Shown one piece after another: positions 1-5,124 of a stretch of 64,000 bases of DNA. Position numbers and translations under genes: made by a program. The notes under the pieces are model-generated. The model was not told the DNA's origin. It saw nothing but the letters and a program-made list of their open reading frames with translations, and searched no databases. This DNA comes from Paraphysomonas bandaiensis (taxonomy: Eukaryota; Protista; Chrysophyceae): assembly GCA_965644295.1 (NCBI GenBank), contig CBFFRP010000395.1, positions 214,825 to 278,824 of the forward strand. The letters run 5' to 3'. How positions within the stretch are numbered: the first letter of the stretch is position 1; every line of letters begins with the position of its first letter.

Positions 1-1818
1 GTTGTGGGATGGCATGCTCCAGAAGATGTTGATATACCTGCTATTGATATACCTAGACGGGATGAAAGTTGTGAAGAATGTGAAGAGTACATTCTAGTCA
101 TGCCGAAAGGGCACACTTCGCTGTGGCAGTCGCTTGGTAGCCAGCGCATTGCGCGCTATGACGTTCAACAATCACTGAGCCTTGTCCACCAAATAGTTGT
201 ATTAGTTCAGCACTTACACGATGCGGGGTTAGTGCACTGTGATCTCAAACCTCGCAATATTCTAATTTCAGACACCCGTCAACTAATTTTATGCGATTTG
301 GATGCAGCTGTTCCTATTGGTGAGCTACGGCCGCAAAATCTGAAGAGCAGTACTGCATATAGTCCGCCTGAGCTAATTCGTCATTATAATAACTCTAATT
401 ATCAGCCAACTGATACAGGTTTGCTTCGCATAGAAGCAAGTTTTGATGTTTGGTCCATTGGAGTTATTTTGTTTGAAGTGTTGACAGGACGACATCTTTT
501 CCCACAGGATATAAGCGACGACAATATGGTGGATGAAGCCTCAGCAATGCAACTCAGTTTGTGGCTATGTATTAACGACGCATTACTTGATATTGTATTG
601 AAAGAATGCGACAGTGTTGAGTTAAGATTGAATGCTCATTACCTGATCCGGTGGTGTCTACAAGGGGACCCTACCCTGCGTCCTAGCATTTCTGATATTC
701 TTACTCATTCGCTCTTTAGTGGTGGAAAATATAGCCCCCCTGATACCTTGCTGTCATATCCTTCGTATAAAGGCAACAAATTATTCAAATCAATAATTTC
801 TCAAAATGGTACTCGCATGAAATATCACGTTTTTATATCACATTTTCAAATGGAGGCATCCGGTGACGTCGGTACATTATATCATATGCTCGAGAATCTC
901 GGTGTGCATGTATGGCGAGATATGAACACGAGGAATTTAACAGAGACAGCCATGCGTCAGGGCGTGTTTGATAGTGATGTATTTGTTCTTTTCCTTACAA
1001 ACTCAGCGCTAAGTCGTTCTTTCTGTCTCAAAGAGGTCGGATGGGCACTTGAATTCGGGAAACCGGTAACAATCATTGTGGAAAGGGAGGAGAGATTTTG
1101 GGCATGGGACTGGACGCGTTGGACACATGACAAATGTTCACGTGTACCGGGAGTATTGAACACCTGGAGAAAAGGTCGACTACAGAATTATTTTGACGAC
1201 GTATATTCACAGCATCATAACGTGTACACTATGATCAAGAAACATCATGAAGAAAAGTCGATGCTTCCCTTTCGACGACGAAAATTTGAAGTGAATGCAT
1301 TGGTACAGGAGTTGTTGCGGAGGGCGGAAGAGCAAGGAGTGACCTGGAAACTACCTCTGACAATTACTGATAGAAAAAATGTGGATTTATTGCGACGCTC
1401 TGAGATATGCATTGTCTCACCTCCAAATGCTACTTCCATTGCTAATGCGATGCGCAACTCTCTTACATTAACATTTCCTTCTATTCAATGGGTGGATGTT
1501 ATTGGAAGTGATACTAATGTTATTGTCATATTAACTTCGCAAACACTCCCTAGCTGCGAGAAGTACATGTCAGACATTGTGGAGAGGAACTCAACCGTAA
1601 CAAACAATGATGATATACATGCCGCCGCAGTGTTATTTATATATTCGGTTGAGCTTGGCTGGGATTTCGCCGACTTCTACGAAAGGCCAGACGACGACAT
1701 TAAAGATTACATTTCCGCCAATGAAGCACTGACACACAGGACACTGCCTTATGAGCATCACGCTCTGTGTTCTGAAATTTTGCGTCGCATATATTTTACT
1801 TCTAATGCGATCAGCTAA
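1..1818 (+). CDS. Ser/Thr protein kinase - TIR domain fusion protein (5'-truncated by window edge)
   Basis: Kinase motifs VHCDLKPRNIL, CDLD in place of DFG, AYSPPE and DVWSIGVILFE. A TIR domain starts at 817: YHVFISH...VHVWRD...GVFDSDVFVLFLTNSALSRSFCLKEVGWALEFGKP. The frame is open from position 1 and the kinase N-lobe is missing. Confidence 0.88.
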   Translation, partial: VVGWHAPEDVDIPAIDIPRRDESCEECEEYILVMPKGHTSLWQSLGSQRIARYDVQQSLSLVHQIVVLVQHLHDAGLVHCDLKPRNILISDTRQLILCDLDAAVPIGELRPQNLKSSTAYSPPELIRHYNNSNYQPTDTGLLRIEASFDVWSIGVILFEVLTGRHLFPQDISDDNMVDEASAMQLSLWLCINDALLDIVLKECDSVELRLNAHYLIRWCLQGDPTLRPSISDILTHSLFSGGKYSPPDTLLSYPSYKGNKLFKSIISQNGTRMKYHVFISHFQMEASGDVGTLYHMLENLGVHVWRDMNTRNLTETAMRQGVFDSDVFVLFLTNSALSRSFCLKEVGWALEFGKPVTIIVEREERFWAWDWTRWTHDKCSRVPGVLNTWRKGRLQNYFDDVYSQHHNVYTMIKKHHEEKSMLPFRRRKFEVNALVQELLRRAEEQGVTWKLPLTITDRKNVDLLRRSEICIVSPPNATSIANAMRNSLTLTFPSIQWVDVIGSDTNVIVILTSQTLPSCEKYMSDIVERNSTVTNNDDIHAAAVLFIYSVELGWDFADFYERPDDDIKDYISANEALTHRTLPYEHHALCSEILRRIYFTSNAIS

Positions 1819-3269: not shown

Positions 3270-4207
3270 TACATACATACATACATACATACATACATAC
3301 ATACATACATACATACATACATACATACATACATACATACATACATACATACATACATACATACATACCTACATACATACATACATACCTACATACATAC
3401 ATACATACATACATACATACATACATACCTACATACATACATACATACCTACATACATACATACATACATACATACATACATACATACATACATACATAC
3501 ATACCTACATACCTACATACCTACATACCTACATACATACATACATACATACCTACATACCTACATACATACATACATACATACATACATACATACATAC
3601 ATACATACATACATACATACATACATACATACATACATACATACATACATACATACATACATACCTACATACCTACATACATACATACATACATACATAC
3701 ATACATACATACCTACATACCTACATACCTACATACCTACATACCTACATACCTACATACCTACATACATACATACATACATACATACATACATACATAC
3801 ATACATACATACATACATACATACATACATAGATACATACATACATACATACATACATACATAGATACATAGATACATAGATACATAGATACATAGATAC
3901 ATAGATACATAGATACATAGATACATAGATACATAGATACATAGATACATTGATACATAGATACATAGATACATAGATACATAGATACATAGATACATAG
4001 ATACATAGATACATAGATACATAGATACATAGATACATATAGATACATAGATACATACATACATACATACATACATACATACATACATACATACATACAT
4101 ACATACATACATACATACATACATACATACATACATACATACATACATACATACATACATACATACATACATACATACATACATACATACATACATACAT
4201 ACATACA

Positions 4208-4241
<34 letters not shown>

Positions 4242-5091
4242 CATACATACATACATACATACATACATACATACATACATACATACATACATACATACAT
4301 ACATACATACATACATACATACATACATACATACATACATACATACATACATACATACATACATACATACATACATACATACATACATACATACATACAT
4401 ACATACATACATACATACATACATACATACATACATACATACATACATACATACATACATACATACATACATACATACATACATACATACATACATACAT
4501 ACATACATACATACATACATACATACATACATACATACATACATACATACATACATACATACATACATACATACATACATACATACATACATACATACAT
4601 ACATACATACATACATACATACATACATACATACATACATACATACATACATACATACATACATACATACATACATACATACATACATACATACATACAT
4701 ACATACATACATACATACATACATACATACATACATACATACATACATACATACATACATACATACATACATACATACATACATACATACATACATACAT
4801 ACATACATACATACATACATACATACATACATACATACATACATACATACATACATACATACATACATACATACATACATACATACATACATACATACAT
4901 ACATACATACATACATACATACATACATACATACATACATACATACATACATACATACATACATACATACATACATACATACATACATACATACATACAT
5001 ACATACATACATACATACATACATACATACATACATACATACATACATACCTACATACATACATACATACATACATACATACATACATACA

Positions 5092-5120
<29 letters not shown>
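3270..5120. repeat. Giant (TACA)n microsatellite, about 1.85 kb, with TACC variants and a (TAGATACA)n block at about 3862-4052
   Basis: Directly visible in the sequence. Confidence 0.99.

Positions 5121-5124
<4 letters not shown>

Follow-up and report, generated by a model that had tools for sequence, protein, structure and literature searches.

What does the open reading frame at the very start of this stretch encode, and could its product cleave NAD+? The stretch, called the window below, is 64,000 nt of DNA from Paraphysomonas bandaiensis (contig CBFFRP010000395.1, in short C395; C395:214825-278824), and its first 1,818 nt on the + strand hold the 3' part of a two-exon gene. An earlier note, made from the letters alone, had read this part as a protein kinase fused to a TIR domain that keeps a catalytic-type glutamate, followed by a possible second, degenerate TIR-like domain, with sensor domains upstream of the window. 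We found its product to be a multidomain signalling protein of the cytosol, in which leucine-rich repeats (LRRs) of the RNI type are followed by a protein kinase domain and two TIR domains, TIR1 and TIR2. Judged by sequence and model, TIR1 is of the enzyme type and shares both its fold and its invariant acid with TIRs that cleave NAD+; TIR2 is its ancient duplicate. The two exons were searched and folded separately, not as the joined 971-aa protein. The features of the window part of the gene are as follows.

1..717, + strand: C-terminal two thirds of the protein kinase domain (Pfam Pkinase, amino acids 23-239 of the window protein)
235..258, + strand: HCDLKPRN catalytic loop, which retains the HRD-type Asp, Lys and Asn (family motif VH[CGSA]D[LIV]K.RN)
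295..303, + strand: DLD in place of DFG, with the metal-binding Asp kept and Gly changed to Asp (DLD, DMD or DFD in the family)
817..1341, + strand: TIR1, predicted enzyme-type TIR domain, amino acids 273-447 of the window protein (Pfam TIR_2 and fold model)
1033..1035, + strand: candidate catalytic Glu of the FCLKE motif (Glu345 in window-frame numbering), predicted helix alpha-C (family alignments)
1267..1281, + strand: PFRRR motif at strand beta-E of TIR1 (P168 and R170-172 invariant in alignment A1)
1402..1806, + strand: TIR2, cryptic TIR-fold domain lacking the catalytic Glu, amino acids 468-602 of the window protein (fold and profile comparison)
1816..1818, + strand: TAA stop codon of the gene; transcript contigs continue into the 3' untranslated region (UTR)

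All the motifs quoted in the earlier note were found at their places, namely HCDLKPRN, DLD and SRSFCLKE (1012-1035, with its Glu at 1033-1035), and in the tail ICIVS (nt 1405-1419), VIVILT (1519-1536), VLFIYS (1630-1647) and GWDF (1657-1668). Pfam TIR_2 (PF13676) matched amino acids 277-356 of the window protein with 34.5 bits against a cut-off of 28 (34.2 bits when the full exon was searched). As Pkinase also scored above its cut-off in the same chain, the kinase-TIR fusion was borne out. These scores, and the 35-46% identity of the TIR-to-tail region to more than 20 other proteins, speak against chance matches.

We modeled the TIR1-TIR2 pair (amino acids 256-605 of the window protein) with AlphaFold2 and obtained a pLDDT of 86.9 and a pTM of 0.83. 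The best superposition of TIR1 was on the TIR domain of SARM1 (VIA-align Z 15.5, rmsd 2.3 Å over 129 residues, 22% identity), and Foldseek likewise ranked the SARM1 TIR first. The structural matches that followed were C. elegans TIR-1, grapevine RUN1/RPV1, RPP1, the SPARTA TIR-APAZ protein and AbTir, and all 50 rows listed by VIA-align were TIR domains. SARM1, TIR-1, RUN1/RPV1, RPP1, SPARTA and AbTir are NAD+-cleaving TIRs. At the sequence level, SARM1 chains appeared in the profile search at E ~0.5 (profile positions 8-92), and in a single-sequence search SARM1 was not among the matches listed. TIR1 was the most conserved part of the protein, with a mean column identity of 52% vs 29% for TIR2. 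Its Pfam match above cut-off and the superposition on SARM1 agree with the TIR fold that had been read from the letters.

The glutamate at nt 1033-1035 was invariant in 20/20 and in 23/23 aligned relatives. It aligned with the Glu of the W..xE (WxxxE) motif in BtpA/TcpB (4lzp) and in a TPR-TIR protein (9m0n), and also with the catalytic Glu of MilB, a CMP hydrolase. The MilB entry 4ohb has an Ala at exactly this position, which is what a catalytic-residue mutant would show. In 2017 Essuman and colleagues are said to have been led to SARM1 E642 by the similarity to MilB. The superposition pairs residues 19-192 of our model with SARM1 561-700, and ahead of helix alpha-C the segment in SARM1 is longer than that of TIR1 by about 10 residues; both would fit an equivalence of the Glu with E642. 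The retention of a catalytic-type Glu, as claimed from the letters, was thus upheld by its invariance in the family and by its alignment with the Glu of MilB, BtpA and the TPR-TIR protein. Taken together, fold and acid argue for TIR1 as a putative enzyme-type TIR.

The last 190 residues of the protein had no Pfam match, and no Pfam model matched TIR2 in any of 20 members of the family. We folded the last 153 residues alone with their own alignment (pLDDT 89.0, pTM 0.85) and compared TIR2 by VIA-align with 48,161 PDB representative chains, an exhaustive search that is independent of Foldseek. Ranks 1 to 16 (Z 12.4 to 9.2) were TIR domains, with the exception of rank 11, a SEFIR-type row (IL-17R/ACT1). 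The best match was the IL-18R-beta TIR (Z 12.4), and the top 16 included Cat1, TIR-1, SARM1, AtTIR, RPS4, RPP1, TIRAP and MyD88. Foldseek also put plant TIRs on top (E ~1e-3, TM ~0.55).

Given these modest Foldseek scores, and with no Pfam TIR model matching, the C-terminal domain might instead be a generic flavodoxin-like or CheY-like receiver fold, and receiver (REC) domains did occur in the structure search at Z 8-9. However, the CheY-like receivers all ranked below the TIRs (Z < 9), with the single SEFIR-type row as the only interruption among the top 16. Independently of the structure search, hhalign aligned TIR2 with the TIR1 of the family strand by strand (probability 84%, E 7.5e-6). 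It paired strands beta-C and beta-D, the W..G/WDF turn, and LPFRRR..FE..A of TIR1 with EAL..R..YE..A of TIR2, so that the PFRRR motif stands against the conserved EAL..R. We consider a receiver fold improbable.

Both the family alignment and hhalign gave no conserved Glu at the catalytic position of TIR2. By the hhalign result and the fold match, the tail is an ancient internal duplicate of TIR1, one that has lost the glutamate. The second degenerate TIR-like domain, put forward as a possibility in the earlier note, therefore proved real, with structure searches topped by TIRs and hhalign showing a Glu-less duplicate of TIR1.

We then ran hidden Markov models of TIR1 and TIR2 against all fetched proteins. 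TIR2 was present in 40/40 proteins whose TIR1 is complete. Another 12 proteins lacked TIR2 and matched TIR1 in part only; in most of them this partial match sits at the terminus of the called protein or close to it, a sign that these gene calls may be truncated. The pairing of TIR1 with TIR2 is thus obligate in the family.

The gene itself was traced on a local stretch (L001) that covers the gene and its upstream DNA, which was translated in three frames; L001:3328 corresponds to window 1828. Within the window, frame 1 of the + strand is open from base 1 to the TAA at 1816-1818, and these 1,818 nt are the 3' part of the gene, the last 605 of its 971 codons. Upstream of the window, the open reading frame (ORF) runs on through the N-lobe of the kinase and across an intron into exon 1. 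The coding sequence is 742 + 2,171 nt, with one 55-nt GT..AG intron at L001:1090-1144. The start codon ATG lies at L001:348, 1,153 nt upstream of the window, and is preceded by an in-frame TAG three codons before it. In three runs that bear the label of the same organism, the transcript contigs lack precisely the intron, and one such contig extends as far as 35 nt before the ATG. Three pieces in a polyA marine metatranscriptome matched the gene with zero differences. Because the transcript contigs skip the intron and the metatranscriptome pieces match, the gene is real, its splicing follows the prediction, and it is transcribed, at sea as well. At L001:3328 (window 1828), in the 3' UTR, all three transcript-type runs of the organism have C where the assembly has T, likely a strain or allele difference.

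One could still suspect a pseudogene or an artefact of assembly or annotation, since the gene extends past the window edge and contig C386 holds a truncated paralogue with a frameshift. This is refuted by the spliced transcript contigs of three runs, which agree with the gene model. The intact reading frame, the strong conservation in the family and a second intact paralogue on contig C15 also speak against such an origin, and we regard it as extremely improbable.

Sensor domains had been expected outside the window. A sensor part was indeed found there, about 250 aa of RNI-type LRRs; the ROC-COR, NB-ARC and ankyrin alternatives did not hold up. Exon 1 matched Pfam LRR_6 with 56 bits in three significant stretches, about six repeats could be made out by eye, and exon 2 opens with the last repeat. 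NB-ARC, NACHT, ROC-COR, ankyrin, SAM and death-fold domains had no Pfam or NCBIfam match in either exon. Pfam gave LRR_6, Pkinase and TIR_2 only, and not the ARM-SAM-SAM-TIR architecture of SARM1. The PADLOC and NCBIfam libraries returned only generic kinase matches and weak ThsB or TIR matches. We found no signal peptide or transmembrane segment, the highest mean Kyte-Doolittle value over 19 residues being 1.49.

In the window protein, Pkinase scored 100 bits against a cut-off of 31.7 over profile positions 66-263. The match begins at profile position 66, which indicates that the window edge truncates the N-lobe. Once the rest of the exon was included, the match covered profile positions 25-263 with 104 bits; the domain (exon-2 amino acids 79-357) starts within this exon, some 120 nt before the first base of the window. 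We read the conservation of the kinase from an alignment with 16 relatives. The catalytic residues are kept and conserved in the family, namely the Lys of VALK, the alpha-C Glu (F-x-R-E, here FERE), the Asp of HCD, the Asn of the catalytic loop and the Asp of DLD. The S..Y.PPE segment and the subdomain XI arginine are also conserved. The G-loop has no glycine (HRSRTSEV here, H/Y-x-S-x-T-S/C-x-V in the family), so that GxGxxG is absent, and the glycine of DFG is missing family-wide (D-[LMF]-D).

By the usual Lys/Asp/Asp criterion, the sequence of the domain is not that of a pseudokinase, and we consider it probably catalytically competent. The kinase belongs to a distinct subfamily, which is tied to TIR: of 39 matches at E < 1e-10, 24 carry TIR_2.

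Searching with the region from the TIR to the tail returned 33 proteins, at least 20 of which matched over 97% of the 344 residues with 35-46% identity. The earlier note had proposed counting the paralogues, and the genome proved to hold two intact genes of this type (on C395 and C15), one frameshifted remnant on C386 and one broken TIR fragment on contig C164. The gene on C15 (L006:643-2550) encodes kinase-TIR1-TIR2 with the Glu retained, and its TIR pair shows 49% identity to that of the window gene. It has DMD at the DFG position, and LRR sequence lies in an ORF just upstream. The C386 copy (L004:6476-8158 = C386:24475-26157) corresponds to the LRR-kinase part, with 76% DNA identity over window 4-750; it changes frame within the kinase, stops at the kinase end, lacks the TIR domains, and is probably decaying. 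Overall, at least 11 loci in the genome scored above the TIR_2 cut-off, and the TIR repertoire therefore exceeds the LRR-kinase-TIR1-TIR2 family. TIR_2 loci also lie on C280, C111, C25, C438, C299, C277, C407 and C97, some of them in open frames of 840-880 aa.

Outside this genome, several family proteins came from Paulinella micropora (EukProt). In the ESM Atlas, a cluster of 187 proteins, mostly from haptophytes, has the two-domain fold (TM 0.62 over 292 residues). Other matches came from marine metagenomes and metatranscriptomes and bear only automatically assigned names ('serine/threonine protein kinase', 'hypothetical protein' and the like). There were no choanoflagellates among the family matches that carry a name, and a scan of IMG/VR gave no relative of the TIR pair in viral contigs.

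The domains around the TIR pair vary among relatives. LRR_6, LRR_4/LRR_8 or ankyrin repeats precede the kinase, and in some relatives EF-hand pairs or Abhydrolase_2 follow TIR2. EF-hand pairs are fused to TIR1-TIR2 in P0007 (12 members) and P0011. Some TIR1-TIR2 matches apparently had no kinase. On a JGI metagenome contig (L008:7364-11473), a separate LRR-kinase gene (P0063) adjoining a TIR1-TIR2 gene (P0009) had been a candidate as evidence of coupling. We rejected it: the gap between the two is a GT..AG intron that holds a stop codon, and P0063 and P0009 are thus one LRR_4/8-kinase-TIR1-TIR2 gene split by the gene caller. Other stand-alone TIR1-TIR2 matches (400-490 aa) may therefore be fragments as well.

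How might such a protein work? The explanation that we favour, with a probability of roughly 0.6, is an LRR-kinase-TIR1-TIR2 signalling protein whose TIR1 cleaves NAD+. The LRRs (ankyrin repeats in some relatives) would receive a cue or hold the protein off, and the kinase would relay or control activation. TIR1 would then cleave NAD+, leading to depletion of NAD+ or to ADP-ribose (ADPR), cyclic ADP-ribose (cADPR) or another nucleotide signal, with TIR2 as a built-in, fixed non-catalytic TIR partner. The likely setting would be stress, infection or cell-death signalling, possibly linked to Ca2+; the kinase-gated, NAD+-cleaving immune or cell-death module proposed in the earlier note is a plausible inference. 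A Ca2+ link is hinted at by the EF-hand relatives and would fit products of the cADPR/ADPR type.

Several points weigh against this explanation. NAD+ cleavage by the family is predicted from sequence and models, rather than from activity, substrate or phenotype. The position of Glu345 is consistent with that of SARM1 E642, judging by the range of the superposition and the SARM1 motif rather than by a residue-by-residue alignment. The aromatic residue four positions before Glu345 is a Phe, not the Trp of WxxxE. The glycine-free G-loop and DLD could mean weak or atypical ATP binding, and gating of the TIR by the kinase is suggested by a single link, the fusion itself.

The kinase might also be the output. 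TIR1 would then be a protein-protein scaffold and the tandem TIR pair a mere interaction platform, while phosphorylation by the kinase would carry the signal, in the manner of a short-circuited TLR/MyD88/IRAK-type pathway. The kinase does keep all its catalytic residues, and the same logic has been proposed by Richter et al. for Pkinase-TIR fusions of choanoflagellates (PMC6040629). However, a scaffold would leave unexplained why the Glu is invariant in 23/23 relatives, why TIR1 is the most conserved domain and why its nearest structural matches are enzymatic TIRs. In addition, the TIR pair occurs with EF-hand or hydrolase partners in relatives that are apparently kinase-less, where it seems to be the output module by itself. 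We hold a pure scaffold to be rather unlikely.

Somewhat less doubtful, though still not favoured, is a role in ordinary physiology. Here the protein would generate an NAD+-derived second messenger of the cADPR/ADPR type in Ca2+ or stress responses, and would not be an immune or death switch. This would suit the EF-hand pairs on TIR1-TIR2 in P0007 and P0011, as well as the expression of the gene in culture transcriptomes and in a field metatranscriptome for which infection is unrecorded. It would also suit the presence of two intact copies only, without the lineage-specific expansion typical of immune receptors. On the other hand, LRR or ankyrin sensors combined with a TIR are a hallmark of immune receptors, and TIR genes have been tied to virus resistance in haptophytes (PMC12489294).

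Returning to the NAD+-cleaving signalling protein, the role of TIR2 invites a more specific proposal. TIR NADases act as asymmetric pairs, in which the pocket of one subunit is engaged, and a fused pair of a catalytic and a non-catalytic TIR is therefore a plausible single-chain form. By analogy with SARM1, plant resistosomes and AbTir filaments, TIR1-TIR2 might be a single-chain asymmetric TIR dimer, in which TIR2 completes or blocks the pocket of TIR1. We put this forward tentatively and regard it as unlikely for now. If true, oligomerisation would give way to the kinase and the LRRs, or to Ca2+ in the EF-hand relatives, as the switch of the NADase. This would be a new mode of control of TIR enzymes, common to the source lineage, haptophytes and Rhizaria.

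TIR enzymes are an immune currency common to bacteria, plants and animals. Diatoms and haptophytes account for a large share of ocean primary production, and viruses and other pathogens end their blooms, while the cell-autonomous immunity of these algae is nearly uncharted. The gene defines an unnamed, expressed family that joins a sensor repeat, a kinase and a putative enzyme-type TIR in a single chain. This family is a testable entry to NAD+-based signalling, immunity or cell death in marine algae.

Some further observations concern the surroundings of the gene and the genome at large. A perfect-looking microsatellite of 1.85 kb, (TACATACA)n, lies at window 3270-5121, 1.4 kb downstream of the gene. 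It has about 232 copies with 98% matches and yields long spurious ORFs on both strands. Upstream of the gene and outside the window, L003:6960-8105 is repetitive; its translation gives units of about 34 residues in which S-H-G-Q-G-G-S is abundant, and the minus strand carries an ORF of 381 aa there. The genome also has at least seven silicon-transporter (PF03842) loci above the Pfam cut-off.

Among known systems, SARM1 and C. elegans TIR-1 are close in the TIR itself. The Glu lies within helix alpha-C in both cases, and both kinds of protein are cytosolic and multidomain, with the other domains presumably controlling the TIR. Unlike SARM1, the protein described here has LRRs and a kinase in place of ARM and SAM domains, an extra Glu-less TIR, and FCLKE where SARM1 has W..KE. 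Plant TIR-NB-ARC-LRR receptors (RPP1, ROQ1, RUN1) share the combination of LRRs with an enzyme-type TIR, and their TIR folds match ours with Z 13-14. However, our protein has no NB-ARC/STAND ATPase, its order is reversed (N-terminal LRRs, C-terminal TIR), and a kinase stands in the place of the switch.

In domain composition the choanoflagellate 'Kinase TIRs' come nearest. Richter et al. described these Pkinase-TIR proteins in 2018, reported the architecture from choanoflagellates alone and suggested that it provides a streamlined route of signalling (PMC6040629); the term was found in no other paper of the literature searched. They too join Pkinase and TIR in one chain without a transmembrane segment, and some have LRRs, a likeness of architecture only. 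In contrast, the present family occurs in the source organism, Paulinella, haptophytes and marine metagenomes, and a tandem cryptic TIR2 has not been described for the Kinase TIRs.

Two diverged tandem TIRs missed by Pfam have been reported for Dictyostelium TirE, in a study that also mapped the eukaryotic TIR clades (bioRxiv 10.64898/2026.04.30.722052). Compared by description only, TirE resembles our protein in its tandem TIRs with Pfam-missed domains, but it has RCC1 repeats and no kinase. TIRs that produce cADPR are known from a choanoflagellate, an amoebozoan, a cryptophyte and an oomycete, no enzymatic protist TIR having been shown earlier (bioRxiv 10.64898/2026.04.20.719644). In Gephyrocapsa huxleyi, virus-resistant strains express intracellular SARM1-like TIR genes with a conserved Glu (PMC12489294). 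These resistance TIRs are, again by description only, like ours in coming from marine algae and in having the conserved Glu and a SARM1-like fold, but they are reported to have no extra domains. The literature searched describes no LRR-kinase-TIR-TIR family in diatoms, haptophytes or Rhizaria. Set against these systems, the protein encoded at the start of the window stands out by a new, conserved architecture around a TIR of the enzyme type, and by a cryptic second TIR that is obligate and had gone unrecognised.

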